Assembly: GCA_964057225.1 (NCBI GenBank)
Contig: OZ059898.1
Coordinates: forward strand, 5,828,001 to 5,892,000
From: Auanema rhodensis
Lineage: Eukaryota; Animalia; Nematoda
Reading direction: 5' to 3'
Length of the DNA: 64,000 bases
In this document: positions 1-42,418 of the stretch, one piece after another
Layout of the letters: the number at the start of each line of letters is the position of its first letter
Numbering within the stretch: the stretch's first letter is position 1
Translations under genes and position numbers: made by a program
Notes under the pieces: model-generated
Database searches by the model: none
What the model was told of the DNA's origin: nothing
The model's input: only the letters and a program-made list of their open reading frames with translations

Positions 1-178
1 CCACTACACCACGAGATCGCTGATAGTTCTCTTTTCATAGAAAATCATATTCTGATTAGCTTATGTTTATGACACCAAAATGTTCCGTCAAGAACTGAAA
101 GATATGACTTCTGATACCTCTGATATGAGAGAAAATCATATTCTTAATGACTTTTAGCTCTGTTACTTCACTGTAAGT

Positions 179-192
179 AAAAAAAACTAAAA
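179..192 (-). terminator. RNA polymerase III oligo-T terminator (T4 then T8) downstream of the tRNA, repeated in every unit
   Basis: Minus strand after the discriminator reads TATGTTTTAGTTTTTTTT. In other blocks the second run is TTTTTCTT or TTTTTATT. Confidence 0.85.
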
Positions 193-196
193 CATA

Positions 197-269
197 TGAT
201 CTCGGGCGGGCTCGAACCGCCGGCCTTCTGTGTGTTAGACAGATGTGATAACCACTACACCACGAGATC
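197..269 (-). tRNA. tRNA-Val-AAC: tRNA-Val(AAC), first complete copy, representative of about 115 copies
   Basis: Minus strand reads GATCTCGTGGTGTAGTGGTTATCACATCTGTCTAACACACAGAAGGCCGGCGGTTCGAGCCCGCCCGAGATCA. Acceptor stem GATCTCG/CGAGATC, A-box TGGTGTAGTGG, anticodon arm TCTGT-CTAACAC-ACAGA, T arm GGCGG-TTCGAGC-CCGCC, discriminator A. Confidence 0.97.
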
Positions 270-3200
270 GCTGATAGTTCTCTTTTCATAGAAAATCATA
301 TTCTGATTAGCTTATGTTTATGACACCAAAATGTTCCGTCAAGAACTGAAAGATATGACTTCTGATACCTCTGATATGAGAGAAAATCATATTCTTAATG
401 ACTTTTAGCTCTGTTACTTCACTGTAAGTAAAAAAAACTAAAACATATGATCTCGGGCGGGCTCGAACCGCCGGCCTTCTGTGTGTTAGACAGATGTGAT
501 AACCACTACACCACGAGATCGCTGATAGTTCTCTTTTCATAGAAAATCATATTCTGATTAGCTTATGTTTATGACACCAAAATGTTCCGTCAAGAACAGA
601 AAAATATGACTTCTGCTACCTCTGATAAGAGAGAAAATCATATTCTTAATGACTTTTAGCTCTGTTACTTCACTGTAAGTAAAAAAAACTAAAACATATG
701 ATCTCGGGCGGGCTCGAACCGCCGGCCTTCTGTGTGTTAGACAGATGTGATAACCACTACACCACGAGATCGCTGATAGTTCTCTTTTCATAGAAAATCA
801 TATTCTGATTAGCTTATGTTTATGACACCAAAATGTTCCGTCAAGAACTGAAAGATATGACTTCTGATACCTCTGATATGAGAGAAAATCATATTCTTAA
901 TGACTTTTAGCTCTGTTACTTCACTGTAAGTAAAAAAAACTAAAACATATGATCTCGGGCGGGCTCGAACCGCCGGCCTTCTGTGTGTTAGACAGATGTG
1001 ATAACCACTACACCACGAGATCGCTGATAGTTCTCTTTTCATAGAAAATCATATTCTGATTAGCTTATGTTTATGACACCAAAATGTTCCGTCAAGAACA
1101 GAAAAATATGACTTCTGATACCTCTGATAAGAGAGAAAATCATATTCTTAATGACTTGTAGCTCTGTTACTTCACTGTAAGTAAAAAAAACTAAAACATA
1201 TGATCTCGGGCGGGCTCGAACCGCCGGCCTTCTGTGTGTTAGACAGATGTGATAACCACTACACCACGAGATCGCTGACAGTTCTCTTTTCATAGAAAAT
1301 CATATTCTGATTAGCTTATGTTTATGACACCAAAATGTTCCGTCAAGAACAGAAAAATATGACTTCTGCTACCTCTGATAAGAGAGAAAATCATATTCTT
1401 AATGACTTGTAGCTCTGTTACTTCACTGTAAGTAAAAAAAACTAAAACATATGATCTCGGGCGGGCTCGAACCGCCGGCCTTCTGTGTGTTAGACAGATG
1501 TGATAACCACTACACCACGAGATCGCTGTTAGCTCTATTTTCATAGAAAATCATATTCTGATTAGCTTATGTTTATGACACAAAAATGTTCGGTCAAGAA
1601 CTGAAAAATATGACTTCTGATACCTTTGATAAGAGAGAAAATCATATTCTTAATGACTTGTAGCTCTAATACTTCACTGTAAGTAAGAAAAACTAAAACA
1701 TATGATCTCGGGCGGGCTCGAACCGCCGGCCTTCTGTGTGTTAGACAGATGTGATAACCACTACACCACGAGATCGCTGATACATCTCTTATCATACGAA
1801 ATCATATTCTGATTAGCTTATGGTTATGACACAAAAATGTTCGGTCAAGAACTGAAAAATATGATTTCTGATACTTCTGATATGGGAGAAAATCAAATTC
1901 TTATTGACTTGTAGCTCTGATACTTCACTGTAAGTAAGAAAAACTAAAACATATGATCTCGGGCGGGCTCGAACCGCCGGCCTTCTGTGTGTTAGACAGA
2001 TGTGATAACCACTACACCACGAGATCGCTGACAGTTCTCTTTTCATAGAAAATCATATTCTGATTAGCTTATGTTTATGACACCAGAATGTTCCGTCAAG
2101 AACAGAAAAATATGACTTCTGATACCTCTGATATGAGAGAAAATCATATTCTTAATGACTTGTAGCTCTGTTACTTCACTGTAAGTAAAAAAAGATAAAA
2201 CATATGATCTCGGGCGGGCTCGAACCGCCGGCCTTCTGTGTGTTAGACAGATGTGATAACCACTACACCACGAGATCGCTGATAGTTCTCTTTTCATAGA
2301 AAATCATATTCTGATTAGCTTATGTTTATGACACCAAAATGTTCCGTCAAGAACAGAAAAATATGACTTCTGATACCTCTGATATGAGAGAAAATCATAT
2401 TCTTAATGACTTGTAGCTCTGTTACTTCACTGTAAGTAAAAAAAACTAAAACATATGATCTCGGGCGGGCTCGAACCGCCGGCCTTCTGTGTGTTAGACA
2501 GATGTGATAACCACTACACCACGAGATCGCTGATAGTTCTCTTTTCATAGAAAATCATATTCTGATTAGCTTATGTTTATGACACCAAAATGTTCCGTCA
2601 AGAACAGAAAAATATGACTTCTGATACCTCTGATATGAGAGAAAATCATATTCTTAATGACTTGTAGCTCTGTTTCTTCACTGTAAGTAAAAAAAACTAA
2701 AACATATGATCTCGGGCGGGCTCGAACCGCCGGCCTTCTGTGTGTTAGACAGATGTGATAACCACTACACCACGAGATCGCTGATAGTTCTCTTTTCATA
2801 GAAAATCATATTCTGATTAGCTTATGTTTATGACACAAAAATGTTCCGTCAAGAACAGAAAAATATGACTTCTGATACCTCTGATATGAGAGAAAATCAT
2901 ATTCTTAATGACTTGTAGCTCTGTTACTTCACTGTAAGTAAAAAAAACTAAAACATATGATCTCGGGCGGGCTCGAACCGCCGGCCTTCTGTGTGTTAGA
3001 CAGATGTGATAACCACTACACCACGAGATCGCTGATAGTTCTCTTTTCATAGAAAATCATATTCTGATTAGCTTATGTTTATGACACCAAAATGTTCCGT
3101 CAAGAACAGAAAAATATGACTTCTGATACCTCTGATAAGAGAGAAAATCATATTCTTAATGACTTGTAGCTCTGTTACTTCACTGTAAGTAAAAAAAACT

Positions 3201-6200
3201 AAAACATATGATCTCGGGCGGGCTCGAACCGCCGGCCTTCTGTGTGTTAGACAGATGTGATAACCACTACACCACGAGATCGCTGATAGTTCTCTTTTCA
3301 TAGAAAATCATATTCTGATTAGCTTATGTTTATGACACCAAAATGTTCCGTCAAGAACAGAAAAATATGACTTCTGATACCTCTGATATGAGAGAAAATC
3401 ATATTCTTAATGACTTGTAGCTCTGTTACTTCACTGTAAGTTAAAAATACTAAAACATATGATCTCGGGCGGGCTCGAACCGCCGGCCTTCTGTGTGTTA
3501 GACAGATGTGATAACCACTACACCACGAGATCGCTGATAGTTCTCTTTTCATAGAAAATCATATTCTGATTAGTTTATGTTTATGACACCAAAATGTTCC
3601 GTCAAGAACAGAAAAATATGACTTCTGATACCTCTGATATGAGAGAAAATCATATTCTTAATGACTTGTAGCTCTAATACTTCACTGTAAGTAAGAAAAA
3701 CTAAAACATATGATCTCGGGCGGGCTCGAACCGCCGGCCTTCTGTGTGTTAGACAGATGTGATAACCACTACACCACGAGATCGCTGATAGTTCTCTTTT
3801 CATAGAAAATCATATTCTGATTAGCTTATGTTTATGACACCAAAATGTTCCGTCAAGAACAGAAAGATATGACTTCTGATACCTCTGATATGAGAGAAAA
3901 TCATATTCTTAATGACTTTTAGCTCTGTTACTTCACTGTAAGTAAAAAAAACTAAAACATATGATCTCGGGCGGGCTCGAACCGCCGGCCTTCGGTGTGT
4001 TAGACAGATGTGATAACCACTACACCACGAGATCGCTGATAGTTGTCTTTTCATAGAAAATCATATTCTGATTAGCTTATGTTTATGACACCAAAATGTT
4101 CCGTCAAGAACAGAAAAATATGACTTCTGCTACCTCTGATAAGAGAGAAAATCATATTCTTAATGACTTGTAGCTCTGTTACTTCACTGTAAGTAAAAAA
4201 AACTAAAACATATGATCTCGGGCGGGCTCGAACCGCCGGCCTTCTGTGTGTTAGACAGATGTGATAACCACTACACCACGAGATCGCTGATAGTTCTCTT
4301 TTCATAGAAAATCATATTCTGATTAGCTTATGTTTATGACACCAAAATGTTCCGTCAAGAACAGAAAGATATGACTTCTGATACCTCTGATATGAGAGAA
4401 AATCATATTCTTAATGACTTTTAGCTCTGTTACTTCACTGTAAGTAAAAAAAACTAAAACATATGATCTCGGGCGGGCTCGAACCGCCGGCCTTCGGTGT
4501 GTTAGACAGATGTGATAACCACTACACCACGAGATCGCTGATAGTTGTCTTTTCATAGAAAATCATATTCTGATTAGCTTATGTTTATGACACCAAAATG
4601 TTCCGTCAAGAACAGAAAAATATGACTTCTGCTACCTCTGATAAGAGAGAAAATCATATTCTTAATGACTTGTAGCTCTGTTACTTCACTGTAAGTAAAA
4701 AAAACTAAAACATATGATCTCGGGCGGGCTCGAACCGCCGGCCTTCTGTGTGTTAGACAGATGTGATAACCACTACACCACGAGATCGCTGATAGTTCTC
4801 TTTTCATAGAAAATCATATTCTGATTAGCTTATGTTTATGACACCAAAATGTTCCGTCAAGAACAGAAAAATATGACTTCTGATACCTCTGATATGAGAG
4901 AAAATCATATTCTTAATGACTTTTAGCTCTGTTACTTCACTGTAAGTAAAAAAAACTAAAACATATGATCTCGGGCGGGCTCGAACCGCCGGCCTTCGGT
5001 GTGTTAGACAGATGTGATAACCACTACACCACGAGATCGCTGATAGTTCTCTTTTCATAGAAAATCATATTCTGATTAGCTTATGTTTATGACACCAAAA
5101 TGTTCCGTCAAGAACAGAAAAATATGACTTCTGCTACCTCTGATAAGAGAGAAAATCATATTCTTAATGACTTGTAGCTCTGTTACTTCACTGTAAGTAA
5201 AAAAAACTAAAACATATGATCTCGGGCGGGCTCGAACCGCCGGCCTTCTGTGTGTTAGACAGATGTGATAACCACTACACCACGAGATCGCTGATAGTTC
5301 TCTTTTCATAGAAAATCATATTCTGATTAGCTTATGTTTATGACACCAAAATGTTCCGTCAAGAACAGAAAAATATGACTTCTGATACCTCTGATAAGAG
5401 AGAAAATCATATTCTTAATGACTTGTAGCTCTGTTACTTCACTGTAAGTAAAAAAAACTAAAACATATGATCTCGGGCGGGCTCGAACCGCCGGCCTTCT
5501 GTGTGTTAGACAGATGTGATAACCACTACACCACGAGATCGCTGATAGTTCTCTTTTCATAGAAAATCATATTCTGATTAGCTTATGTTTATGACACCAA
5601 AATGTTCCGTCAAGAACAGAAAAATATGACTTCTGATACCTCTGATATGAGAGAAAATCATATTCTTAATGACTTGTAGCTCTGTTACTTCACTGTAAGT
5701 TAAAAATACTAAAACATATGATCTCGGGCGGGCTCGAACCGCCGGCCTTCTGTGTGTTAGACAGATGTGATAACCACTACACCACGAGATCGCTGATAGT
5801 TCTCTTTTCATAGAAAATCATATTCTGATTAGTTTATGTTTATGACACCAAAATGTTCCGTCAAGAACAGAAAAATATGACTTCTGATAACTCTGATATG
5901 AGAGAAAATCATATTCTTAATGACTTTTAGCTCTGTTACTTCACTGTAAGTAAAAAAAACTAAAACATATGATCTCGGGCGGGCTCGAACCGCCGGCCTT
6001 CTGTGTGTTAGACAGATGTGATAACCACTACACCACGAGATCGCTGATAGTTCTCTTTTCATAGAAAATCATATGCTGATTAGCCTATGGTTATGACACA
6101 AAAATGTTCCGTCAAGAACAGAAAAATATGACTTCTGATACCTCTGATATGAGAGAAAATCATATTCTTAATGACTTGTAGCTCTGTTACTTCACTGTAA

Positions 6201-6620
6201 GTAAAAAAAACTAAAACATATGATCTCGGGCGGGCTCGAACCGCCGGCCTTCTGTGTGTTAGACAGATGTGATAACCACTACACCACGAGATCGCTGATA
6301 GTTCTCTTTTCATAGAAAATCATATGCTGATTAGCCTATGGTTATGACACAAAAATGTTCCGTCAAGAACAGAAAAATATGACTTCTGATACCTCTGATA
6401 TGAGAGAAAATCATATTCTTAATGACTTTTAGCTCTGTTACTTCACTGTAAGTAAAAAAAACTAAAACATATGATCTCGGGCGGGCTCGAACCGCCGGCC
6501 TTCTGTGTGTTAGACAGATGTGATAACCACTACACCACGAGATCGCTGATAGTTCTCTTTTCATAGAAAATCATATTCTGATTAGTTTATGTTTATGACA
6601 CCAAAATGTTCCGTCAAGAA

Positions 6621-6868
6621 TGTGGCGATCTACCACAAGTGTATAGTATGGTTGGAAGTAAAACACAAATTGAATATGTAGAAAAGGGTTTATTGATGAA
6701 TTAACAAGACAAGCACGGAATAAAATCACTGACTGCGAACGTTGAAAATGTAAGTCTGATCTCTTCTCGTGGGCGGTCGTCAGCCTGAAACAAAGAGTTA
6801 GTCATGCCACATGTATAACACAACATGTGGTATGGATAAAAATTACTTAGGAAGTTACAAGAAAGAAG

Positions 6869-6908
<40 letters not shown>

Positions 6909-6973
6909 AGGAAAGACAAATAAAACAATTGTTGAAGATAAAATTTATACAAACTCACTCGCTTATCGCGACA
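6621..6973 (-). repeat. 3' LTR of the BEL/Pao element
   Basis: TGTGGCGATC...TATCGCGACA imperfect terminal inverted repeat, internal (GA)n tract, minus-strand AATAAA at about 6689-6694; matches 16023-16375. Confidence 0.96.
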
Positions 6974-6981
6974 CTCCCGGC
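6974..6981 (-). other. Plus-strand priming site / PPT-like motif (GCCGGGAG) abutting the 3' LTR
   Basis: Minus strand GCCGGGAG|TGTCGCG, immediately before the 3' LTR. Confidence 0.6.
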
Positions 6982-7003
6982 AATGCGGGAATGAGAAGAA
7001 GGC

Positions 7004-7516
7004 CTACAAAGGTCTTTTACGTTTTATATCACCACAAACCACTCCATGATGCGTATCCGCCTTACATCTATAGCAGGATACCTCGCAAATCGCTGGATGT
7101 TTTTGATTCAAACATCTGATGCATAACCCCAGTTCATGAAGACGGAGAGTGCGTTCCGGTGAGGAAGGATAAATCGGACAGGCCGCAGTACGGTGCCCAT
7201 CAGCTGTCGGTTTATTGCAGAATACACATGAAGCTTTAGGAGCAGTCTGAATGGTCAAATTGTCTAGTTTCAGATTTAACGAATGTTGAATATTGTCCAG
7301 TCGTTCGGATAGATGGTTCACCGCGCTAGCTAGGTGCTCGTAGAGCCTCTTTTCAAGCACAATTAGTTGCCTCAGATTGGCAGCAGTGTTAGGTAGATGG
7401 GAATATTTTTTGAGCTCTTCCTCAAAGGAAGCATTCTCAATTATATTCGAGACAATATCTTCCATTTTCATGGAATATAGGAGAAACATGAGCTGCATCC
7501 TTATATACATGTTCAC
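7004..7516 (-). CDS. Accessory ORF of the BEL element: coiled-coil followed by three Cys/His zinc-knuckle-like motifs
   Basis: 170-aa ORF with CVFC...H....C, CIRC...H...C and CYRC....HH...C. First in-frame ATG at 7510; a CAG acceptor lies at 7519-7521, so it may be spliced. Confidence 0.75.
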   Translation of the reverse strand: MNMYIRMQLMFLLYSMKMEDIVSNIIENASFEEELKKYSHLPNTAANLRQLIVLEKRLYEHLASAVNHLSERLDNIQHSLNLKLDNLTIQTAPKASCVFCNKPTADGHRTAACPIYPSSPERTLRLHELGLCIRCLNQKHPAICEVSCYRCKADTHHGVVCGDIKRKRPL

Positions 7517-7812
7517 ATCTGGACTTTAAACGCTGATTAACATCTATTAGTTTATTGTACAATGGTGTGTTTAGGTTATCTTGTTACAGATACAATGAAT
7601 TTTAGAGCCTGTACAAAAGGTTATGTGTTATGTAACTGAGTTGGATAAAAGAAACTTGATACTACCATAAATTGAAAAGAAAGAAAAACAATGATATTGT
7701 TTTATTACAATGGTTATATTCGTACATAATGCTTTCTTTTTCTTTTGTTTCATTATTATTTCAATTTTTAATTTTAAATTTAATCTCCACAAGAAATTCT
7801 TCTCTTATGCTT

Positions 7813-9303
7813 TTAAAATCTTTGATCCCGAAATAAGGCTTTTGATTTTATCCACAGTGTGAATATCCTGGTAGCTATCCATTGTGTGGTTAAGACTGTA
7901 TTCAAAACTACACAGTACATGATGGGTGTACATGCCACATATCCTATGGTGGCGGTTATTGCAACGCCTATCAATATGATTCCCAACTTTGATAAAATTA
8001 ACTTGAAGATTGGAGCGAAGTCAATGGATTTGGATTCTGTACCCTTACTTGAGTCACTTTCGTTTATTTCATCTATGCTTGCTATGTGATGTAATATTCC
8101 TTTAATAATGATCTTAATTTTTTTATTGTCGCATGTGGTATAGCATAATTCATCAATCTGAGAATTTTCTCTTTTCATTGTTACTTTTGTGATTGCTACT
8201 TTTGGAGAGCATTTTATCATGAATACTTCTTTTTGACATTCGATAGAAATCCATGTTTCTTCTGCCGTAAGGCATTGGAATTCTGCGAATGCACCCTGCC
8301 CGCAGGAGTAGCAACCTGATAGTTTTGTCAGGGCAGGTGCGCAAGGCAAATTGTTGGAGAAAATCACTGAGTTTAAGAATAGGGATGAATCGACCGTAAC
8401 TAAATTTTCGTCTAAATTCGTAGAGAATGATAACGTGTTATCTTTAGTTTTAAAGTTTTGGTTAGGAGATTTTATGTCTGATGTATTGGACATTTTTTCA
8501 AAAGTAGGGGTATCACACCTACATTTTATTTCATCAAATCTATTGAATGTGCAAGGGCAGAATGAGGATACTGTACAGTTATTAAAATGTTTTAATGCGG
8601 CTTCCTCTGTTGCACATTGAATTATTCCCTTTGTGTGTATATCCGTAATGTACGTGTTTTCTTTGGAGGAAAAAAATAATTTTGTGTACATTTCTGGAGG
8701 AGGTTGTGATTGTGATAACGTTGTTATATTGAAAAGTTGTTCACGATTTTTCGTGTGAGGTTGTAGAGTGATATTGTAATTATTTTTCTGCTGGAGTAAT
8801 GTTGTTTCTATATTAAATACGGTTTGGGTGGACCAACTATCACAAGTATAGACTTCGTATACTTCCTCAGTGACGGGTATATGCTCTATTTTGTAGAAAA
8901 GACAAGGATCTGTCCAAATCATAGGACATGTGTAAAATCTCGCTGACGATGTGAAGCAACCTGATTGTGAAGGGAACGTATATGGTTGTAGTTCCTCGAT
9001 TTTATTATGGAGCGAGTTAGTTTCACATGTTCCGTCACACGAGCCCCGGTGACGGCATCGTAATATGCTCAATATGTTGACGGTTGTCTGTCTAGTGAAG
9101 TATCTAGTATTCTTTTGGCAGACATGTTCAGTATATAGTTTAGTTATTTTAAATTGACCAATTTCATGATTAGAATGCGTTATGGTAATGCATAATTGTT
9201 TTGTTCCGGGAGAAAATATGATATCTTGACTGTATTCGTGATAACAAGCTAAGTTGTCATCGCATCGTATGTTAACGAAGTGTTGAACATGAACATCGGA
9301 ACA
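7813..9303 (-). other. Env domain: phlebovirus Gc-like (class II fusion) glycoprotein portion of the polyprotein
   Basis: Internal signal peptide LLAIILALCIGSCSS followed by CSDVH; Cys pattern RC..RGSC...C, CLFY, YEVYTC.SW, LSGCYSC.QGA...C; C-terminal TM. Matches the known phlebovirus-like env of nematode BEL elements. Confidence 0.8.
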
Positions 9304-12300
9304 TGAACTGCAGCTTCCAATACATAAAGCCAAGATGATTGCCAGTAACGATGGTAAAGATGTTTGCGACCCTCTAGTAAAGAGAGAGAATTTTGGTGGC
9401 TTTCTCGTATGGTTTAAAATAGGGTAAATATGCTTTTGAAAGGTTTCATGATCCACAATATTAGCGTCTTGTGTGTTCGTTTGTTTTAATTGCAACGTAT
9501 CATTGTGGTCTTCTGTTATTTTTTGATCAGTTTCATGATCTTCTTGTTCGGAGATTGTTTTATGTTTTAATTTCATGATGTTGAGCATGGTTTGAGTGTT
9601 TTTGGACCATGTCTTATATCTATATTGGCTGTAGCCCATGCGGCATAGACAAGAGACTATGAGGGTAACTGCCATAATGGTTATTAGCACTGTCCATGTT
9701 GCCATTTCTGGGGAGCAATGAGGATTCGCTATAAGTTTTGTGGTGAACATGTTAGAGTCCTTGCAACTATTGATTTCTTCGGCATATGTCGAAGTAATTA
9801 TAATCGGTAAGGAAAGCGCTTTCATTATGTCAGCTGCTACTTTTGGGTTTATTTTATTTTTTCTTTGGTGTGTAGCATAGGACATTTTTAGTGGGAAGGC
9901 TTTTATAATTTCCTTCTCAGTGACATCATCTTGTTCTGTATGTTTTGCTGTTTTTACTGATGATTGTTTTGTCTTATTTTGAGGTCGATCATTTGTTGCA
10001 TCCTCATTATTCTCTGTTTCTGGAGTGTATGTATTATCATGTTGAGAGTTATCTGAGTCATATGCAATATCGTAATTATGGCTAACATCATTTATGTCTT
10101 TATTCTCATGTATTGTTTGATCTGTATGTTCTATAGGATGATCGAAAAGTATATTGTCTAATACAATATCAGTATGTGGGGTTCTATCTGTTGAGCTATT
10201 ATTTTCTTGAACTATGTGTGAGTTGTCTTCTATGATTTTGTTGCTGTTAGTGTTGCATCTTATCTCTAGTGGATAGAGCTGATTGATGGATCGAATAATT
10301 ATGTTTCCGTTGCTTGTTGCAACTTTTGCTGAACGTATGTTGCCATCTGAACTAGTGATTGTTTCAATGATGCGACCTAGTTTCCATGTTCCTCGTGGCA
10401 ACATGTCGTTTTGTATCAATACTATTTCATCTGGTTGGGGGAAGATGTTTGTGTGATTCTTTCTATGGTGTTTATGCTTAAATATATCTTTTAAGCTTGT
10501 TAGATATTCTTCTTGAAATCGTTTCCAAAATTTAGATGCTGAGTCTTCTGATAATTGAAGCGCTTCTAGCGCTTGCTCTGTTGATTGAATCGTTTGAATA
10601 TCGCTATGGATATCAAATATATGAGTATCCGCGTTGTTTTCAGGTAATGAAAACTTTATGGCTGATGTTAAAAAGTCAATTGGCCTTATGGGTAGAGTAT
10701 CTAAATTATCTGGGTGTGGATGGGTGAGTGGGCGTGTATTAATTATAGCTTCTATTTTTACAATGGCTGTGTGTAAGTCATCCAGGGACATTCGACTAGG
10801 GATGAAACATTTTTTGAGTGAAGCTTTGGTTACACCTACTAAACGTTCCCAACATCCACCTTTCCAGGGTGATAATGGAGTGTTGTATATCCATTTAATT
10901 TTTTGTTGTGCTAGTGTGTTTAGTAAGCTTCTTTCGTTGTAATCCGATGTTTTTTCAAGGGTTTCTAATATTTTTGAGCTCAATATAAAGTTTCCTGCGC
11001 AGTCACTACGCATAATTTCTGGAGTACCTCTGCGTGATATAAATCTAGTGAATGCATTCATAAAAGCAACTGTGGATTGATTGGTGACTACCTCTAAGTG
11101 AATTGCTCTAGTTGTCATGCATGTAAACAGACAGATATGGACTTTAGACCCATTTCGAAGGGTGAAGGGGCCCATAAGATCACACCCTGTTGAAAAGAAT
11201 GCTCTTGTAAGAATCGTTCTATCTTTTGGTAGCGATGGCATATCTGGTAATTCATAAGGGTGTGATTGAAATCTTTTACATGTCACACAGTTTTTCAATG
11301 TTTGCTTAATGACTCCGGTTATTTTTGGTATATAGAACTTTTGTCTGAGTTGAATAAGCGTGAAATGTTTGCCTTGATGATTATTGTCTTTGTGTATTTT
11401 GTTGATCAGTTTTTTAACTATGGGGTTTGTTTTAAGAAGGAATATAGGGTTTTTCGTCTCTTCGGGAAGAAGAGTATTTTGTAAACGGCTTCTTACGCGA
11501 TAAATATCCCATGTATCTTTGAAGAATTTTAGATTTATATGTCTTTGCTGTAAGTCATCAAGGCTCATATTAGATTGACTGTTACTGATCAAAATTTTTT
11601 CAATAATGTTGATGTCTTCAACAGTGTGCGTGTCTGTTGATGTGAGATGTTTTATTTTTTGCAACTTGTTGGCGTCGTTAGGATGGACTGTGAAAAACCA
11701 TTTCTTGAATAATTTCCCTACGGTTGTCATTGTTTTGATCACGTCATCATAGTTTTCACGAATGTTCCAAATATCATGGGTTGGAGGATTGTCTATGATT
11801 ATGTGGACAACATTGTGATGCTCCGATTTTAATTCTGCGTTATTCCTGCTCGAGTTGTTAGGTGAGCCGAGTGATGTCAGAGGGTTATGCACGGAAAGTT
11901 TAGTTAACCAATGTGGGCCTTCAATCCAGTCGGAAACTTGTAGTTTTTCCATGTCTGCACCTCGAGATCCGATGTCTGCTGTGTTGAACGAGGTTTGTAC
12001 GTGATATAGTTCTATATTGCAACATATTTGTTCGATTTGCTTGAGCTGTTTCTTTATAGTATTTGTTTGATTATTAATGAACAGTGGGAGAGATTTTTGT
12101 GAGACAATCCATGATAGTGCGATGTTGCTATCGCTCACAATGTTAACTTTCGCTATTTTCGGACATATGGTGACGATAGATAATGCCATTCGTACAGCTA
12201 AACGAATGGCTAGTAACTCTAATCGTGGAATTGTAGTTTTATTTTTGGGTGCTATGCGTGATTTCCCGTTTAGCAGAGAACTAATCTTCCCATTTGTTTG

Positions 12301-15744: not shown

Positions 15745-16007
15745 TTTTGTCGTAGATGTAGGAATAACGCTTATATTCCTTTTACTTTCTCTTTTTTTTT
15801 TGTTTGTTTGGTGATCACAGTATATGTGATAGTGAATCTCTGTTTCTGTCTGCAGAGTTTGCTTATGGTTCAAGTCTTTTTGGTGTGACTTGACGTGGAC
15901 TAATGGTTGCCACGATTTCTATTAAGTATGTTTTTTGCTCAAACACGCTTGGTTTGAGCTGTATCTCACCTGCCACGCGGGACTTGAAGCGGCTAAGATC
16001 TGAACTA

Positions 16008-16019: not shown

Positions 16020-16022
16020 ATT

Positions 16023-30778: not shown

Positions 30779-30791
30779 GGTGGAACCTCCA
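30779..30791 (-). other. Primer-binding site complementary to the 3' end of tRNA-Gln
   Basis: Minus strand TGGAGGTTCCACC directly abutting the 5' LTR; complementary to ...GGTGGAACCTCCA. Confidence 0.85.
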
Positions 30792-31062
30792 CGTTCCGTT
30801 ATGCTCCTGCGTCGATAATATAAACCATTGTAGTTTATACTAAAGATTTATTGGCATGAAACTACAACAATAATATACAAAGATAAAGATACAATAAAAT
30901 AAGATTAATATAAGTATAAAGACTAAACTACAAGCCGTCCATGAGCTTGCTAAGAGGCGAACTCCCGACCAAGGGAACGAGGGAAGGCGGAGCCATTCCT
31001 CGTTCCTCTGGTCGTCTGGCTCTAACCCTTCAGCTACATTTATGGGGAGTCCGAATGGAACG
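30792..31062 (-). repeat. 5' LTR of the CG-ended element
   Basis: 271 bp; five substitutions versus 27649-27919 counted by eye. Confidence 0.9.
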
Positions 31063-34000
31063 TTATGTTTATGACACAAAAAATGTTCGGTCAAGAACTG
31101 AAAAATATGACTACTGATACCTGTGATATAAAAGAAAGTCATATTCTTAATGACTTGTAGCTCTAATACTTCACTGTAAGTAATAAAAACTAAAACATAT
31201 GATCTCGGGCGGGCTCGAACCGCCGGCCTTCTGTGTGTTAGACAGATGTGATAACCACTACACCACGAGATCGCTGTTAGCTCTCTTTTCATAGAAACTC
31301 ATATTCTGATTAGCTTATGGTTATGTCACAAAAATATTCCGTCAAGAACTGAAAAATATGACTACTGATACCTCTGATATAAAAGAAAGTCATATTCTTA
31401 ATGACTTGTAGCTCTAATACTTCACTGTAAGTAATAAAAACCAAAACATATGATCTCGGGCGGGCTCGAACCGCCGGCCTTCTGTGTGTTAGACAGATGT
31501 GATAACCACTACACCACGAGATCGCTGTTAGCTCTCTTTTCATAGAAAATCATATTCTGATTAGCTTATGGTTATGTCACAAAAATATTCCGTCAAGAAC
31601 TGAAAAATATGACTACTGATACCTCTGATCTGAGAGAAAATCATATTCTTAATGACTTGTAGCTCTGATACTTCACTGTAAGTAATAAAAACTAAAACAT
31701 ATGATCTCGGGCGGGCTCGAACCGCCGGCCTTCTGTGTGTTAGACAGATGTGATAACCACTACACCACGAGATCGCTGTTAGCTCTCTTTTCATAGAAAA
31801 TCATATTCTGATTAGCTTATGGTTATGACACAAAAATGTTGGGTCAAGAACTGAAAAATATGACTACTGATACCTCTGATATGAGAGAAAATCATATTCT
31901 TAATGACTTGTAGCTCTGATACTTCACTGTAAGTAATAAAAACTAAAACATATGATCTCGGGCGGGCTCGAACCGCCGGCCTTCTGTGTGTTAGACAGAT
32001 GTGATAACCACTACACCACGAGATCGCTGTTAGCTCTCTTTTCATAGAAAATCATATTCTGATTAGCTTATGGTTATGTCACAAAAATATTCCGTCAAGA
32101 ACTGAAAAATATGACTACTGATACCTCTGATATAAAAGAAAGTCATATTCTTAATGACTTGTAGCTCTAATACTTCACTGTAAGTAATAAAAACTAAAAC
32201 ATATGATCTCGGGCGGGCTCGAACCGCCGGCCTTCTGTGTGTTAGACAGATGTGATAACCACTACACCACGAGATCGCTGTTAGCTCTCTTTTCATAGAA
32301 AATCATATTCTGATTAGCTTATGGTTATGTCACAAAAATATTCCGTCAAGAACTGAAAAATATGACTACTGATACCTCTGATATAAAAGAAAGTCATATT
32401 CTTAATGACTTGTAGCTCTAATACTTCACTGTAAGTAATAAAAACTAAAACATATGATCTCGGGCGGGCTCGAACCGCCGGCCTTCTGTGTGTTAGACAG
32501 ATGTGATAACCACTACACCACGAGATCGCTGTTAGCTCTCTTTTCATAGAAAATCATATTCTGATTAGCTTATGGTTATGTCACAAAAATATTCCGTCAA
32601 GAACTGAAAAATATGACTACTGATACCTCTGATATAAAAGAAAGTCATATTCTTAATGACTTGTAGCTCTAATACTTCACTGTAAGTAATAAAAACTAAA
32701 ACATATGATCTCGGGCGGGCTCGAACCGCCGGCCTTCTGTGTGTTAGACAGATGTGATAACCACTACACCACGAGATCGCTGTTAGCTCTCTTTTCATAG
32801 AAAATCATATTCTGATTAGCTTATGGTTATGACACAAAAATGTTGGGTCAAGAACTGAAAAATATGACTACTGATACCTCTGATATGAGAGAAAATCATA
32901 TTCTTAATGACTTGTAGCTCTGATACTTCACTGTAAGTAATAAAAACTAAAACATATGATCTCGGGCGGGCTCGAACCGCCGGCCTTCTGTGTGTTAGAC
33001 AGATGTGATAACCACTACACCACGAGATCGCTGTTAGCTCTCTTTTCATAGAAAATCATATTCTGATTAGCTTATGGTTATGACACAAAAATGTTGGGTC
33101 AAGAACTGAAAAATATGACTACTGATACCTAAAAACTAAAAATATGACTACTGATACCTCTGATATAAAAGAAAGTCATATTCTTAATGACTTGTAGCTC
33201 TAATACTTCACTGTAAGTAATAAAAACTAAAACATATGATCTCGGGCGGGCTCGAACCGCCGGCCTTCTGTGTGTTAGACAGATGTGATAACCACTACAC
33301 CACGAGATCGCTGTTAGCTCTCTTTTCATAGAAAATCATATTCTGATTAGCTTATGGTTATGTCACAAAAATATTCCGTCAAGAACTGAAAAATATGACT
33401 ACTGATACCTCTGATCTGAGAGAAAATCATATTCTTAATGACTTGTAGCTCTAATACTTTTCTGTAAGTAAGAAAAACTAAAACATATGATCTCGGGCGG
33501 GCTCGAACCGCCGGCCTTCTGTGTGTTAGACAGATGTGATAACCACTACACCACGAGATCGCTGCTAGCTCTCTTTTCATAGAAAATCATATTCTGATTA
33601 GCTTATGGTTATGACACAAAAATGTTGGGTCAAGAACTGAAAAATATGACTACTGATACCTCTGATATGAGAGAAAATCATATTCTTAATGACTTGTAGC
33701 TCTGATACTTCACTGTAAGTAATAAAAACTAAAACATATGATCTCGGGCGGGCTCGAACCGCCGGCCTTCTGTGTGTTAGACAGATGTGATAACCACTAC
33801 ACCACGAGATCGCTGTTAGCTCTCTTTTCATAGAAAATCATATTCTGATTAGCTTATGGTTATGACACAAAAATGTTCCGTCAAGAATTGAAAAATATGA
33901 CTACTGATACCTCTGATATGAGAGAAAATCATATTCTTAATGACTTGTAGCTCTAATACTTCACTGTAAGTAAGAAAAACTAAAACATATGATCTCGTGC

Positions 34001-37000
34001 GGGCTCGAACCGCCGGCCTTCTGTGTGTTAGACAGATGTGATAACCACTACACCACGAGATCGCTGTTAGCTCTCTTTTCATAGAAAATCATATTCTGAT
34101 TAGCTTATGGTTATGACACAAAAATGTTCCGTCAAGAATTGAAAAATATGACTACTGATACCTCTGATATGAGAGAAAATCATATTCTTAATGACTTGTA
34201 GCTCTGATACTTCACTGTAAGTAATAAAAACTAAAACATATGATCTCGGGCGGGCTCGAACCGCCGGCCTTCTGTGTGTTAGACAGATGTGATAACCACT
34301 ACACCACGAGATCGCTGTTAGCTCTCTTTTCATAGAGAATCATATTCTGATTAGCTTATGGTTGTGACATAAAAATGTTCCCTCAAGAACTGAAAAATAT
34401 GACTTCTGATACCTCTGATATGAGAGAAAATCATATTCTTAATGACTTGTAGCTGTAATACTTCACTGTAAGTAATAAAAACTAAAACATATGATCTCGG
34501 GCGGGCTCGAACCGCCGGCCTTCTGTGTGTTAGACAGATGTGATAACCACTACACCACGAGATCGCTGTTAGCTCTCTTTTCATAGAGAATCATATTCTG
34601 ATTAGCTTATGGTTGTGACATAAAAATGTTCCGTCAAGAATTGAAAAATATGACTACTGATACCTCTGATATGAGAGAAAATCATATTCTTAATGACTTG
34701 TAGCTCTGATACTTCACTGTAAGTAATAAAAACTAAAACATATGATCTCGGGCGGGCTCGAACCGCCGGCCTTCTGTGTGTTAGACAGATGTGATAACCA
34801 CTACACCACGAGATCGCTGTTAGCTCTCTTTTCATAGAGAATCATATTCTGATTAGCTTATGGTTGTGACATAAAAATGTTCCCTCAAGAACTGAAAAAT
34901 ATGACTTCTGATACCTCTGATATGAGAGAAAATCATATTCTTAATGACTTGTAGCTGTAATACTTCACTGTAAGTAAGAAAAACTAAAACATATGATCTC
35001 GGGCGGGCTCGAACCGCCGGCCTTCTGTGTGTTAGACAGATGTGATAACCACTACACCACGAGATCGCTGTTAGCTCTCTTTTCATAGAAAATCATATTC
35101 TGATTAGCTTATGGTTATGACACAAAAATGTTCCGTCAAGAACTGAAAAATATGACTATTGATACCTCTGATATGAGAGAAAATCATATTCTTAATGACT
35201 TGTAGCTCTGATACTTCACTGTAAGTAATAAAAACTAAAACATATGATCTCGGGCGGGCTCGAACCGCCGGCCTTCTGTGTGTTAGACAGATGTGATAAC
35301 CACTACACCACGAGATCGCTGTTAGCTCTCTTTTCATAGAAAATCATATTCTGATTAGCTTATGGTTATGACACAAAAATGTTCCGTCAAGAACAGAAAA
35401 ATATGACTTCTGATACCTCTGATATGAGAGAAAATCATATTCTTAATGACTTGTAGCTCTAATACTTCACTGTAAGTAAGAAAAACTAAAACATATGATC
35501 TCGGGCGGGCTCGAACCGCCGGCCTTCTGTGTGTTAGACAGATGTGATAACCACTACACCACGAGATCGCTGTTAGCTCTCTTTTCATAGAGAATCATAT
35601 TCTGATTAGCTTATGTTTATGACACCAAAATGTTCCGTCAAGAACAGAAAAATATGACTTCTGATACCTCTGATATGAGAGAAAATCATATTCTTAATGA
35701 CTTGTAGCTCTAATACTTCACTGTAAGTAAAAAAAACTAAAACATATGATCTCGGGCGGGCTCGAACCGCCGGCCTTCTGTGTGTTAGACAGATGTGATA
35801 ACCACTACACCACGAGATCGCTGATAGTTCTCTTTTCATAGAAAATCATATTCTGATTAGCTTATGTTTATGACACCAAAATGTTCCGTCAAGAACAGAA
35901 AAATATGACTTCTGATACCTCTGATAAGAGAGAAAATCATATTCTTAATGACTTGTAGCTCTAATACTTCACTGTAAGTAAGAAAAACTAAAACATATGA
36001 TCTCGGGCGGGCTCGAACCGCCGGCCTTCTGTGTGTTAGACAGATGTGATAACCACTACACCACGAGATCGCTGATAGTTCTCTTTTCATAGAAAATCAT
36101 ATTCTGATTAGCTTATGTTTATGACACCAAAATGTTCCGTCAAGAACAGAAAAATATGACTTCTGATACCTCTGATAAGAGAGAAAATCATATTCTTAAT
36201 GACTTGTAGCTCTAATACTTCACTGTAAGTAAAAAAAACTAAAACATATGATCTCGGGCGGGCTCGAACCGCCGGCCTTCTGTGTGTTAGACAGATGTGA
36301 TAACCACTACACCACGAGATCGCTGATAGTTCTCTTTTCATAGAAAATCATATTCTGATTAGCTTATGGTTGTGACACAAAAATGTTCCGTCAAGAACTG
36401 AAAAATATGACTTCTGATACCTCTGATATGAGAGAAAATCATATTCTTAATGACTTGTAGCTCTAATACTTCACTGTAAGTAAGAAAAACTAAAACATAT
36501 GATCTCGGGCGGGCTCGAACCGCCGGCCTTCTGTGTGTTAGACAGATGTGATAACCACTACACCACGAGATCGCTGTTAGCTCTCTTTTCATAGAAAATC
36601 ATATTCTGATTAGCTTATGGTTGTGACACAAAAATGTTCCGTCAAGAACTGAAAAATATGACTTCTGATACCTCTGATATGAGAGAAAATCATATTCTTA
36701 ATGACTTGTAGCTCTAATACTTCACTGTAAGTAAGAAAAACTAAAACATATGATCTCGGGCGGGCTCGAACCGCCGGCCTTCTGTGTGTTAGACAGATGT
36801 GATAACCACTACACCACGAGATCGCTGTTAGCTCTCTTTTCATAGAAAATCATATTCTGATTAGCTTATGGTTATGACACAAAAATGTTCCCTCAAGAAC
36901 TGAAAAATATGACTTCTGTTACTTCTGATATGAGAGAAAATCATATTCTTAATGACTTGTAGCTCTAATACTTCACTGTAAGTAAGAAAAACTAAAACAT

Positions 37001-40000
37001 ATGATCTCGGGCGGGCTCGAACCGCCGGCCTTCTGTGTGTTAGACAGATGTGATAACCACTACACCACGAGATCGCTGTTTGCTCTCTTTTCATAGAAAA
37101 TCATATTCTGATTAGCTTATGGTTATGACACAAAAATGTTCCCTCAAGAACTGAAAAATATGACTTCTGTTACTTCTGATATGAGAGAAAATCATATTCT
37201 TAATGACTTGTAGCTCTGATACTTCACTGTAAGTAAGAAAAACTAAAACATATGATCTCGGGCGGGCTCGAACCGCCGGCCTTCTGTGTGTTAGACAGAT
37301 GTGATAACCACTACACCACGAGATCGCTGTTTTCTCTCTTTTCATAGAAAATCATATTCTGATTAGCTTATGGTTGTGACACAAAAATGTTCCGTCAAGA
37401 ACGGAAAAATATGACTTCTGTTACTTCTGATATGAGAAAATCATATTCTTAATGACTTGTAGCTCTAATACTTCACTGTAAGTAAGAAAAACTAAAACAT
37501 ATGATCTCGGGCGGGCTCGAACCGCCGGCCTTCTGTGTGTTAGACAGATGTGATAACCACTACACCACGAGATCGCTGTTTGCTCTCTTTTCATAGAAAA
37601 TCATATTCTGATTAGCTTTTGGTTGTGACACAAAAATGTTCCGTCAAGAACGGAAAAATATGACTTCTGTTACTTCTGATATGAGAGAAAATCATATTCT
37701 TAATGACTTGTAGCTCTAATACTTCACTGTAAGTAAGAAAAACTAAAACATATGATCTCGGGCGGGCTCGAACCGCCGGCCTTCTGTGTGTTAGACAGAT
37801 GTGATAACCACTACACCACGAGATCGCTGTTAGCTCTCTTTTCATAGAAAATCATATTCTGATTAGCTTATGGTTATGACACAAAAATGTTCCCTCAAGA
37901 ACTGAAAAATATGACTACTGATACCTCTGATATGAGAGAAAATCATACCGCCGGCCTTCTGTGTGTTAGACAGATGTGATAACCACTACACCACGAGATC
38001 GCTGTTAGCTCTCTTTTCATAGAAAATCATATTCTGATTAGCTTATGGTTATGACACAAAAATGTTGGGTCAAGAACAGAAAAATATGACTTCTGATACC
38101 TCTGATATGAGAGAAAATCATATTCTTAATGACTTGTAGCTCTGATACTTCACTGTAAGTAATAAAAACTAAAACATATGATCTCGGGCGGGCTCGAACC
38201 GCCGGCCTTCTGTGTGTTAGACAGATGTGATAACCACTACACCACGAGATCGCTGTTAGCTCTCTTTTCATAGAAAATCATATTCTGATTAGCTTATGGT
38301 TATGACACAAAAATGTTCCCTCAAGAACTGAAAAATATGACTTCTGTTACTTCTGATATGAGAGAAAATCATATTCTTAATGACTTGTAGCTCTGATACT
38401 TCACTGTAAGTAAGAAAAACTAAAACATATGATCTCGGGCGGGCTCGAACCGCCGGCCTTCTGTGTGTTAGACAGATGTGATAACCACTACACCACGAGA
38501 TCGCTGTTAGCTCTCTTTTCATAGAAAATCATATTCTGATTAGCTTATGGTTATGACACAAAAATGTTCCCTCAAGAACTGAAAAATATGACTTCTGTTA
38601 CTTCTGATATGAGAGAAAATCATATTCTTAATGACTTGTAGCTCTAATACTTCACTGTAAGTAAGAAAAACTAAAACATATGATCTCGGGCGGGCTCGAA
38701 CCGCCGGCCTTCTGTGTGTTAGACAGATGTGATAACCACTACACCACGAGATCGCTGTTAGCTCTCTTTTCATAGAAAATCATATTCTGATTAGCTTATG
38801 GTTATGACACAAAAATGTTCCCTCAAGAACTGAAAAATATGACTTCTGATACCTCTGATATGAGAGAAAATCATATTCTTAATGACTTGTAGCTCTAATA
38901 CTTTTCTGTAAGTAAGAAAAACTAAAACATATGATCTCGGGCGGGCTCGAACCGCCGGCCTTCTGTGTGTTAGACAGATGTGATAACCACTACACCACGA
39001 GATCGCTGTTAGCTCTCTTTTCATAGAAAATCATATTCTGATTAGCTTATGGTTATGACACAAAAATGTTCCGTCAAGTACTGAAAAATATGACTTCTGA
39101 TACCTCTGATATGAGAGAAAATCATATTCTTAATGACTTGTAGCTCTAATACTTCACTGTAAGTAAGAAAAACTAAAACATATGATCTCGGGCGGGCTCG
39201 AACCGCCGGCCTTCTGTGTGTTAGACAGATGTGATAACCACTACACCACGAGATCGCTGTTTGCTCTCTTTTCATAGAAAATCATATTCTGATTAGCTTA
39301 TGGTTATGACACAAAAATGTTCCGTCAAGAACTGAAAAATATGACTTCTGATACCTCTGATATGAGAGAAAATCATATTCTTAATGACTTGTAGCTCTAA
39401 TACTTCACTGTAAGTAAGAAAAACTAAAACATATGATCTCGGGCGGGCTCGAACCGCCGGCCTTCTGTGTGTTAGACAGATGTGATAACCACTACACCAC
39501 GAGATCGCTGATAGTTCTCTTTTCATAGAAAATCATATTCTGATTAGTTTATGTTTATGACACCAAAATGTTCCGTCAAGAACAGAAAAATATGACTTCT
39601 GATACCTCTGATATGAGAGAAAATCATATTCTTAATGACTTGTAGCTCTAATACTTCACTGTAAGTAAGAAAAACTAAAACATATGATCTCGGGCGGGCT
39701 CGAACCGCCGGCCTTCTGTGTGTTAGACAGATGTGATAACCACTACACCACGAGATCGCCGTTAGCTCTCTTTTCATAGAAAATCATATTCTGATTAGCT
39801 TATGGTTATGACACAAAAATGTTCCGTCAAGAACTGAAAAATATAACTACCGATACCTCTGATCTGAGAGAAAATCATATTCTTAATGACTTGTAGCTCT
39901 AATACTTTTCTGTAAGTAAGAAAAACTAAAACATATGATCTCGGGCGGGCTCGAACCGCCGGCCTTCTGTGTGTTAGACAGATGTGATAACCACTACACC

Positions 40001-42418
40001 ACGAGATCGCTGTTTGCTCTCTTTTCATAGAAAATCATATTCTGATTAGCTTATGGTTGTGACACAAAAATGTTCCGTCAAGAACTGAAAAATATGACTA
40101 CTGATACCTCTGATATGAGAGAAAATCATATTCTTAATGACTTGTAGCTCTAATACTTCACTGTAAGTAAGAAAAACTAAAACATATGATCTCGGGCGGG
40201 CTCGAACCGCCGGCCTTCTGTGTGTTAGACAGATGTGATAACCACTACACCACGAGATCGCTGTTTGCTCTCTTTTCATAGAAAATCATATTCTGATTAG
40301 CTTATGGTTGTGACACAAAAATGTTCCGTCAAGAACTGAAAAATATGACTACTGATACCTCTGATATGAGAGAAAATCATATTCTTAATGACTTGTAGCT
40401 CTAATACTTTTCTGTAAGTAAGAAAAACTAAAACATATGATCTCGGGCGGGCTCGAACCGCCGGCCTTCTGTGTGTTAGACAGATGTGATAACCACTACA
40501 CCACGAGATCGCCGTTAGCTCTCTTTTCATAGAAAATCATATTCTGATTAGCTTATGGTTATGACACAAAAATGTTCCGTCAAGAACTGAAAAATATGAC
40601 TACTGATACCTCTGATATGAGAGAAAATCATATTCTTAATGACTTGTAGCTCTAATACTTCACTGTAAGTAAGAAAAACTAAAACATATGATCTCGGGCG
40701 GGCTCGAACCGCCGGCCTTCTGTGTGTTAGACAGATGTGATAACCACTACACCACGAGATCGCCGTTAGCTCTCTTTTCATAGAAAATCATATTCTGATT
40801 AGCTTATGGTTATGACACAAAAATGTTCCGTCAAGAACTGAAAAATATGACTACTGATACCTCTGATATGAGAGAAAATCATATTCTTAATGACTTGTAG
40901 CTCTGATACTTCACTGTAAGTAATAAAAACTAAAACATATGATCTCGGGCGGGCTCGAACCGCCGGCCTTCTGTGTGTTAGACAGATGTGATAACCACTA
41001 CACCACGAGATCGCTGTTTGCTCTCTTTTCATAGAAAATCATATTCTGATTAGCTTATGGTTGTGACACAAAAATGTTCCGTCAAGAACTGAAAAATATG
41101 ACTTCTGTTACTTCTGATATGAGAGAAAATCATATTCTTAATGACTTGTAGCTCTAATACTTCACTGTAAGTAAGAAAAACTAAAACATATGATCTCGGG
41201 CGGGCTCGAACCGCCGGCCTTCTGTGTGTTAGACAGATGTGATAACCACTACACCACGAGATCGCTGATTTCTCTCTTTTCATAGAAAATCATATTCTGA
41301 TTAGCTTATGGTTGTGACACAAAAATGTTCCGTCAAGAACGGAAAAATATGACTTCTGTTACTTCTGATATGAGAGAAAATCATATTCTTAATGACTTGT
41401 AGCTCTAATACTTCACTGTAAGTAAGAAAAACTAAAACATATGATCTCGGGCGGGCTCGAACCGCCGGCCTTCTGTGTGTTAGACAGATGTGATAACCAC
41501 TACACCACGAGATCGCTGTTTGCTCTCTTTTCATAGAAAATCATATTCTGATTAGCTTTTGGTTGTGACACAAAAATGTTCCGTCAAGAACGGAAAAATA
41601 TGACTTCTGTTACTTCTGATATGAGAGAAAATCATATTCTTAATGACTTGTAGCTCTAATACTTCACTGTAAGTAAGAAAAACTAAAACATATGATCTCG
41701 GGCGGGCTCGAACCGCCGGCCTTCTGTGTGTTAGACAGATGTGATAACCACTACACCACGAGATCGCTGTTTGCTCTCTTTTCATAGAAAATCATATTCT
41801 GATTAGCTTTTGGTTGTGACACAAAAATGTTCCGTCAAGAACGGAAAAATATGACTTCTGTTACTTCTGATATGAGAGAAAATCATATTCTTAATGACTT
41901 GTAGCTCTAATACTTCACTGTAAGTAAGAAAAACTAAAACATATGATCTCGTGCGGGCTCGAACCGCCGGCCTTCTGTGTGTTAGACAGATGTGATAACC
42001 ACTACACCACGAGATCGCTGTTAGCTCTCTTTTCATAGAGAATCATATTCTGATTAGCTTATGTTTATGACACCAAAATGTTCCGTCAAGAACAGAAAAA
42101 TATGACTTCTGATACCTCTGATATGAGAGAAAATCATATTCTTAATGACTTGTAGCTCTAATACTTCACTGTAAGTAAGAAAAACTAAAACATATGATCT
42201 CGGGCGGGCTCGAACCGCCGGCCTTCTGTGTGTTAGACAGATGTGATAACCACTACACCACGAGATCGCTGTTTGCTCTCTTTTCATAGAAAATCATATT
42301 CTGATTAGCTTTTGGTTGTGACACAAAAATGTTCCGTCAAGAACGGAAAAATATGACTTCTGTTACTTCTGATATGAGAGAAAATCATATTCTTAATGAC
42401 TTGTAGCTCTAATACTTT
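31063..42418 (-). repeat. tRNA-Val(AAC) tandem array, block 3 (about 44 full copies and 1 deleted copy); right end of the array
   Basis: Same unit; last full tRNA at 42195-42267; the array stops mid-spacer at about 42418. Confidence 0.97.
37947..38000 (-). pseudogene. 3'-truncated tRNA-Val copy
   Basis: A 76-bp deletion joins spacer AATCATA to CCGCCGGCC, removing most of the T loop/B-box, the 3' acceptor strand and the terminator (unit length 175). Confidence 0.9.

Follow-up and report, generated by a model that had tools for sequence, protein, structure and literature searches.

A 299-copy tRNA-Val(AAC) gene array in Auanema rhodense combines satellite-like turnover with constraint on the tRNA gene

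In 5S ribosomal DNA (rDNA) arrays, the norm in eukaryotes, a short gene with an internal promoter is transcribed by RNA polymerase III (Pol III) and repeated head-to-tail; the gene is conserved while the spacer diverges, and concerted evolution proceeds by unequal exchange. Single-isotype transfer RNA (tRNA) arrays of the size described here, 299 tRNA-Val(AAC) genes on scaffold C6 of the nematode Auanema rhodense, are unusual in animals. As a model of how the tRNA-Val(AAC) array works, 5S rDNA is the best analogue, although it differs in its RNA product and in its promoter (type 1, compared with type 2 here). The stretch analyzed was a 64,000-nucleotide segment, C6:5,828,001-5,892,000 (assembly GCA_964057225.1, contig OZ059898.1; hereafter the window), and the full extent of the array was taken from the window plus 130 kb of sequence to its left. 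In the nematodes studied, tRNA genes number from a few hundred to about 1,600 and are mostly dispersed (PMC2888827). The A. rhodense germline assembly comprises 180.9 Mb in seven chromosome scaffolds, with 19,554 tRNA genes including 215 pseudogenes (10.64898/2026.08.27.747507).

Entamoeba arrays are likewise built from tandem units around tRNA genes, occupy a sizeable part of the genome, and have a proposed structural role; their units contain up to 5 tRNA genes and sometimes a 5S RNA, with short tandem repeats in between, and nearly all tRNA genes are arrayed (PMC2652664). By comparison, the tRNA-Val(AAC) array contained one gene per 251-bp unit and no spacer microsatellite, and identical dispersed copies coexisted with it; the multi-gene units and short tandem repeats of an Entamoeba-type array were not found. 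The Ser/Tyr and Pro clusters of Arabidopsis are tandem tRNA clusters beside dispersed copies, and the clustered copies look intact (PMC7544208, PMC12308677), which poses for both systems the question of whether arrayed copies are in use. The A. rhodense array is unlike those clusters in its 299 units. DNA methylation is reportedly part of tRNA cluster silencing in Arabidopsis; rhabditid nematodes are not known to have cytosine methylation. The human variable-number tandem repeat at 1q23.3 is likewise an animal tandem repeat with tRNA genes; it varies in copy number and has been proposed to act as a boundary, and its units are 7.3 kb, CTCF-bound and present in 9-43 copies, compared with 251 bp and 299 copies here (PMC4041453). 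Tandem blocks of tRNA loci have also been reported from A. rhodense itself, in passing and among germline-restricted repeats (10.64898/2026.08.27.747507), whereas the array described here appears to lie in a retained chromosome arm and held 96% of its anticodon family. Apart from that preprint, nothing specific was found in the literature on nematode tRNA satellites.

ARAGORN and Rfam (RF00005) agreed on exactly 115 tRNA-Val(AAC) genes in the window, each of them on the minus strand. The Rfam scores of all 115 copies were between 56 and 66 bits, against a gathering score of 29. Tandem Repeats Finder reported 251-bp repeats at 1-6620, 16376-37947, and 37947-42417 of the window, and the start-to-start spacing of the genes was 251 bp in 108 of 114 intervals. 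The whole array contained 299 tRNA-Val(AAC) genes on the minus strand at C6:5,769,223-5,870,417, a span of 101,195 bp that reached 58.8 kb further left than the window edge. The genes ran head-to-tail at a fixed period over this whole span (287 of 298 intervals were exactly 251 bp). About 75.3 kb of the array consisted of 251-bp units and 25.9 kb of inserted DNA, with five mobile-element insertions interrupting the 299 copies. An earlier reading of the window from its letters only (hereafter the sequence-only reading) had anticipated at least 115 copies in 251-bp units passing the left window edge, and the counts agreed with it on all three points. It had placed the array at positions 1-42418, a stretch found to be cut by insertions at 6621-16375 and 27649-31062.

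The array ended at nearly the same point of the unit on both sides, at unit position 90 on the left and 102 on the right, as would be expected if a single gene, flanked by about 150 bp upstream and 17 bp downstream, had been amplified in place. Within the spacer, two related segments of about 45 bp (AGAATATGATTTTCT... TATCAG) lay about 90 bp apart, at unit positions 122-140 and 212-230 (for example in the unit at 197-447); judged from this pair, the 251-bp unit may have arisen by internal duplication. Judged from its flanking exons, the array seems to occupy the whole of one intron, about 101 kb long, in an SLC26/sulp-type transporter gene, antisense to the host.

Each element expected of a tRNA gene was read directly in the units. 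The A box occupied gene positions 8-18 and read TGGTGTAGTGG, the B box occupied positions 52-62 and read GGTTCGAGCCC, a perfect match, and the 5' leader of the array genes ended in ...CTATCAGC. The gene ended in ...GAGATCA, with CCA not encoded. The anticodon was AAC in 299 of 299 copies. In the window, 105 of 115 copies were identical and the remaining 10 carried one substitution each; array-wide, the canonical sequence was found in 259 of 299 copies and 40 (13%) were altered. Array-borne variants included G10U (6 copies), U3C, G9A, A41C, and C56U. The first 8 nucleotides of the trailer (TATGTTTT) were identical in 298 of 299 units. By cloverleaf score, anticodon, boxes, and terminator, the units are predicted to be genuine eukaryotic nuclear tRNA genes with a Pol III type 2 promoter. 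The intact cloverleaf, boxes, and terminator, as well as the invariant anticodon, had been noticed in the sequence-only reading and were borne out.

An exact whole-genome search with the 28-nt anticodon arm gave 300 matches, of which about 289 were in the array; the shortfall from 299 arose because ten array copies vary within the 28-nt segment. Genome-wide there were about 310 tRNA-Val(AAC) genes, about 96% of them in this array and about 11 dispersed, and the same search found no second tRNA-Val(AAC) array. Ten dispersed copies were read, on C3, C5, C6, and C7; each was identical to the array majority over 73 of 73 positions, with unrelated flanks. The claim of the sequence-only reading that the copy number is far above need was in keeping with 299 arrayed copies against about 11 dispersed ones. 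The TATGTTTT trailer was common to the array and five of the ten dispersed genes, whose flanks were otherwise unrelated, and two further dispersed genes carried the trailer AATGTTTT; the trailer itself seems to be conserved. Because several dispersed genes share the TATGTTTT trailer, it cannot tell array transcripts apart.

Variation among the units was distributed very unequally between gene and spacer. In the window, the tRNA had a nucleotide diversity of 0.0025 and the spacer one of 0.059. Array-wide diversity and the frequency spectrum were computed from the 287 complete 251-bp units; here the corresponding values were 0.0043 and 0.056, and 17 of 73 tRNA sites were segregating compared with 90 of 178 spacer sites (Fisher P=7e-5). 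Rare variants, present in at most 3 copies, were equally dense in the two parts: 19 in the tRNA (0.26 per site, 73 sites) and 42 in the spacer (0.24 per site, 178 sites). Variants present in more than 6 copies were found at none of the 73 tRNA sites and numbered 47 over the 178 spacer sites. The probability that none of 47 spread variants would fall in the tRNA was 1e-7, and low- and high-frequency variants were distributed differently between tRNA and spacer (Fisher P=7e-5).

This contrast persisted at the 50 tRNA sites that belong to neither box (P=9e-6), at G/C sites alone (0 of 41 vs 19 of 53; P=2e-5), and at A/T sites alone (P=0.002). Neither the binding of TFIIIC to the boxes nor base composition therefore explains the difference between tRNA and spacer; base composition and biased gene conversion, considered as its cause, were ruled out by the G/C-only and A/T-only tests. 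Mutation input to the gene equaled that to the spacer, yet units with a changed tRNA or terminator did not expand. The constraint covered the whole RNA and not the boxes alone, which favors the RNA product as the object of selection. The sequence-only reading had described an invariant anticodon beside a spacer with many substitutions, and had proposed that equal diversity in tRNA and spacer, together with no Pol III occupancy, would mark a neutral satellite; by that test, the strongly unequal diversity sets the array apart from one.

The units also showed the behavior of a satellite, as had been supposed for this single-isotype array. Clustering of the units revealed, from the left, H and E blocks and a large A domain, with a B/J domain at the right end. 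Higher-order patterns were present, namely a CACACA two-unit periodicity and recurring strings of the KFAFMA type. The mean distance between units rose from 7.3 differences for neighbors to 10.1 at a lag of 100 units, and 70 distinct sequences (about two thirds) were found among 108 units in the window. Together, the block domains and higher-order patterns indicate ongoing turnover. A 4.7-kb piece, consisting of one unit, a 2,465-bp Tc1-like insert and eight units, was present twice, 10,838 bp apart, with zero differences; the pair stems either from unequal exchange in the very recent past or from a duplication made by the assembler.

On this evidence, we favor with moderate confidence the reading that the locus is an array of real Pol III tRNA-Val(AAC) genes that grew in place, that turns over like a satellite, that is constrained in its RNA product, and whose size is non-adaptive. 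The starting point would have been a single tRNA-Val(AAC) gene within the intron. Repeated unequal exchange or replication slippage of the 251-bp unit would then have enlarged the array in place, with satellite-like turnover continuing. During that turnover, purifying selection on the RNA product would act as the filter, operating on array haplotypes, and a substantial share of the copies would be transcribed, now or recently, to supply tRNA-Val. The very high copy number would not itself be adaptive and would reflect a lineage-wide tendency of A. rhodense tRNA genes to amplify into arrays; it is probably a by-product of that tendency rather than of need.

Several observations weigh against this reading. 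We infer transcription of the array only from the constraint on gene and terminator. Gene conversion, instead of selection, could keep the tRNA body uniform. Singletons were not significantly scarcer in the tRNA than in the spacer (6 vs 24, P=0.32). Among stem variants, 12 of 14 broke a base pair and none was compensated, and T55 and C56 were also mutated. The 40 altered copies look like unfiltered damage; with 13% of copies altered and most stem variants pair-breaking, selection on any single copy is weak and damaged copies persist. The antisense intronic place and the five accumulated insertions are as in junk DNA. Finally, most silencing precedent comes from Arabidopsis, where tRNA genes in clusters are for the most part silenced (PMC7544208), and a similar array can therefore be mostly silent.

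The main alternative is a mostly silent, effectively neutral or selfish satellite, in which the dispersed copies would serve translation and the uniformity of the genes would come from recent amplification together with homogenization, by gene conversion either between array copies or templated by the dispersed genes. We regard this as a possible explanation, though an unlikely one. The dispersed copies would provide about 11 identical genes, a family size that is ordinary in Caenorhabditis. Whole-genome totals in that genus are about 960-1,590 tRNA genes (PMC2888827). Rare variants reached equal density in tRNA and spacer and the majority were damaging, insertions accumulated, a 4.7-kb block was duplicated without a difference, and there is the precedent of epigenetically silenced tRNA clusters in Arabidopsis (PMC7544208). 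A silent satellite accounts poorly, however, for the absence of all 47 spread variants from the tRNA, non-box sites included, and for the invariant terminator. Homogenization within the array should affect the spacer too, and conversion limited exactly to the 73-nt gene and the 8-nt trailer, templated by 11 copies against 299, would be unparsimonious.

Five mobile-element insertions were found within the array (Table 1). The 9,755-bp BEL/Pao long terminal repeat (LTR) element is a very recent insertion; it contained one 2,686-aa frame (7813-15873, minus strand) with gag-like, Peptidase_A17, reverse transcriptase, integrase, DUF5641, and phlebovirus-G2-like env domains. The 7,752-bp BEL/Pao element contained a 1,180-aa frame with DUF5641 and Phlebovirus_G2 domains. 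The 3,414-bp element had the termini CGTTCC...GGAACG and no pol. The 2,465-bp Tc1-like insert replaced 161 bp of the array, including one tRNA. Each of the three LTR insertions had the orientation of the tRNA and was located no more than 75 bp upstream of a tRNA gene; for three insertions to land in that span by chance, the probability was about 0.03. These three events hint at Pol III-directed integration of LTR elements into the array.

A more speculative proposal, which we consider rather improbable, is that the array serves as a regulated reservoir of dosage. In most cells the majority of copies would be silent, to be switched on at peak translation demand, in the germline and early embryo, with selection acting on the array as a whole; LTR elements, env-bearing BEL/Pao ones included, might also use the arrays as favored landing sites, sparing genes. 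In Arabidopsis, the Ser/Tyr cluster was reported to be switched on in root tips. If true, the dosage reservoir and the LTR landing sites would explain how about 20,000 tRNA genes are tolerated in a somatic genome of about 60 Mb.

Highly improbable is a putative chromatin or structural platform, in which TFIIIC/Pol III sites would recruit condensin or cohesin, or would form a boundary, a pairing site or an LTR landing pad, with tRNA output secondary. Such a platform would make use of the 299 intact pairs of A and B boxes in 101 kb, and would fit the placement and orientation of the three LTR insertions; tRNA genes bind condensin in yeast (PMC4210444), and the human tRNA tandem repeat has been proposed as a boundary element (PMC4041453). 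Against it, constraint extended to the 50 non-box tRNA positions and to the terminator, beyond the needs of TFIIIC binding, and many arrays of other isotypes are scattered through the genome, contrary to a locus-specific role. As the constraint covers the whole RNA, structural roles are disfavored as the sole explanation. The sequence-only reading had suggested that the array may have a structural role or supply tRNA fragments; the view of it as a one-off with a structural role of its own was not supported, as the genome, in which 19,554 tRNA genes are annotated, contains many such arrays.

The position of the array was considered in relation to programmed DNA elimination. A. rhodense somatic cells lose about 61% of the germline genome, and some of the eliminated tandem repeats are tRNA arrays; 28 internal break sites carry a 29-bp palindrome, exactly four per autosome and all at gene/satellite transitions, and one break site is printed as chromosome 5 position 16,502,174 (10.64898/2026.08.27.747507). 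The palindrome core was found at C6:16,502,165-85, matching the printed site, which identifies C6 as chromosome 5 of the preprint. C5, the other candidate, contained no palindrome in C5:16,501,674-16,502,674. The layout of C6 (Table 1) was taken from sampled positions. The exact core TTCAGGCTNAGCC was found at 14 sites genome-wide, compared with 0-1 for a control, and its sites on C6 were limited to two at 3.83 Mb and one each at 16.27 Mb and 16.50 Mb. No match was found on C6 between 3.83 and 16.27 Mb, in an exact search that also missed two sites that must flank the central satellite block.

The SFE-like palindromes at C6:3,832,625-3,832,751 shared the GGCTNAGCC core in opposite orientation, 98 bp apart, and lay 125-250 bp beyond the end of the 351-bp satellite. 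In all probability they represent the break site at the left of chromosome 5, as numbered in the preprint, together with a back-up site. The array, at C6:5.77-5.87 Mb, was 1.94 Mb to the right of (inside) this break site and more than 3.6 Mb to the left of the central satellite block, and was not on the satellite side of a break-site palindrome. Judged from this position rather than from read depth, the array would lie in a somatically retained chromosome arm, which argues against germline-restricted DNA; an arm that is retained and rich in genes also agrees with the gene density seen to the right of the array. The germline-restricted location suggested in the sequence-only reading was not borne out, as the array has the left break site (3.83 Mb) on one side and the central satellite block (beyond 9.5 Mb) on the other. 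It is very improbable that programmed elimination removes the array as germline-restricted DNA, or that the size of the array is an assembly artifact: the species does eliminate about 61% of its germline genome, tRNA arrays included (10.64898/2026.08.27.747507), and the 4.7-kb stretch found twice could be an assembler duplication, but the array is well inside the left break site and far from the central satellite on a chromosome with four break sites, the lack of an exact core between 3.83 and 16.27 Mb counts weakly in the same direction, and 70 distinct units of 108 in the window, clean target duplications, and orderly blocks are hard to obtain by mis-assembly of HiFi reads.

The apparent host gene of the array was recognized on both flanks. 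On the left, C6:5,763,877-5,769,004 contained five colinear tblastx exon matches to a paralogue at C6:15.25 Mb, the last of them corresponding to Sulfate_transp positions 279-311. On the right, a TTTCCAG acceptor was located about 53 bp from the array edge and was followed by open exons. The tblastx comparison with the C6:15.25 Mb paralogue matched the left flank only, and a C5 paralogue gave no matches. The host gene was not listed in a whole-genome Pfam search with PF00916, and Pfam matches at the exon level, where exons were searched singly, were weak. In the paralogue, neighboring exons in the corresponding part of the gene were only about 50 bp apart. Further to the right, exons of a CAP/SCP-like secreted protein were recognized on the minus strand at window positions 49914-50691 by the motif ...HADTCDFRHSRGRMNVGENIW....

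Table 1. Features of the tRNA-Val(AAC) array, its insertions, its host gene and scaffold C6. Positions are those of the window unless prefixed; L001, L002, and L003 are left-flank pieces.
Feature	Position	Strand	Details
Array block 1	1..6620	-	26 tRNA-Val(AAC) genes, 251-bp units; continues left to C6:5,769,223
Array block 2	16376..27648	-	45 tRNA-Val(AAC) genes
Array block 3	31063..42417	-	44 tRNA-Val(AAC) genes; includes 280-bp and 426-bp irregular units
Canonical 73-nt tRNA-Val(AAC) gene (example)	197..269	-	Sequence shared by 259/299 array copies and the 10 dispersed copies read
3' trailer and Pol III terminator (example)	179..196	-	TATGTTTT, then AG, T8
BEL/Pao LTR retroelement with env	6621..16375	-	9,755 bp; 353-bp identical LTRs; TTCTT target duplication; 71-75 bp upstream of tRNA gene
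Second BEL/Pao element with env, different family	C6:5,780,111-5,787,862		7,752 bp; 413-bp identical LTRs; ATC (3-bp overlap) target duplication; 3-6 bp upstream of tRNA gene
Non-autonomous LTR element	27649..31062	-	3,414 bp; 271-bp LTRs, 5 differences; ATAA target duplication; 42-45 bp upstream of tRNA gene
Tc1/mariner-type insert, two copies	L001:7012-9476; L002:7850-10000 and L003:1-314		2,465 bp; HTH_Tnp_Tc3_2 frame
Apparent upstream exons of SLC26/sulp-type host gene	C6:5,763,877-5,769,139	+	tblastx vs paralogue
Apparent downstream exons of SLC26/sulp-type host gene	42470..44330	+	STAS domain 43450-43806 (E=5.8e-5)
351-bp satellite	C6 0 to 3,832,500		
Two break-site-like palindromes	C6 3,832,635 and 3,832,733		
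Non-satellite sequence	C6 samples 3.85-9.5 Mb		
231-bp satellite	C6 sample 10.5 Mb		
Non-satellite sequence	C6 samples 12.5-16.5 Mb		
Satellites	C6 samples 18.5 and 20.5 Mb		

Other tRNA arrays were observed on C4. At C4:9,430,001-9,432,000 and 9,468,001-9,470,000, a 213-bp tandem array contained interleaved tRNA-Val(TAC) and tRNA-Val(CAC) genes, which were distinguished by the wobble base and by a single T-stem position; their interleaving means that two isoacceptors are maintained in one array. Arrays of tRNA-Arg(TCG) genes with a 377-bp period, in both orientations, were present across C4:18.56-18.94 Mb (read at 18,566,001-18,568,000 and 18,600,001-18,602,000). Break-site-like palindromes were located to the left of these arrays, at C4:18,366,882 and 18,367,951; from these palindromes, the tRNA-Arg(TCG) arrays may lie in eliminated DNA.

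The tRNA gene count of this genome and the existence of tRNA arrays in it were already known (10.64898/2026.08.27.747507). New here are the full size of the tRNA-Val(AAC) array, its share of the family, its location in apparently retained DNA, the constraint signature in the frequency spectrum, the pattern of insertion sites, and the apparent intronic context. With one anticodon family almost wholly in a single array of about 300 copies, in a genome with a total of about 19,500 tRNA genes, A. rhodense is an extreme case, and it raises the question of how a multigene family is kept clean by selection when almost any one copy could be dispensed with. The frequency spectrum, with equal mutation input and no spread of damaged genes, would be a concrete, testable signature of array-level purifying selection, and the variants G10U, U3C, C56U, and others are built-in tags for measuring the expression of arrayed copies. 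Lying antisense, as it appears to, within a transporter-gene intron longer than 100 kb, the array would lend itself naturally to testing whether Pol II and Pol III interfere with each other. The retained position, as judged here, would show that not all tRNA arrays of the species are discarded from the soma.

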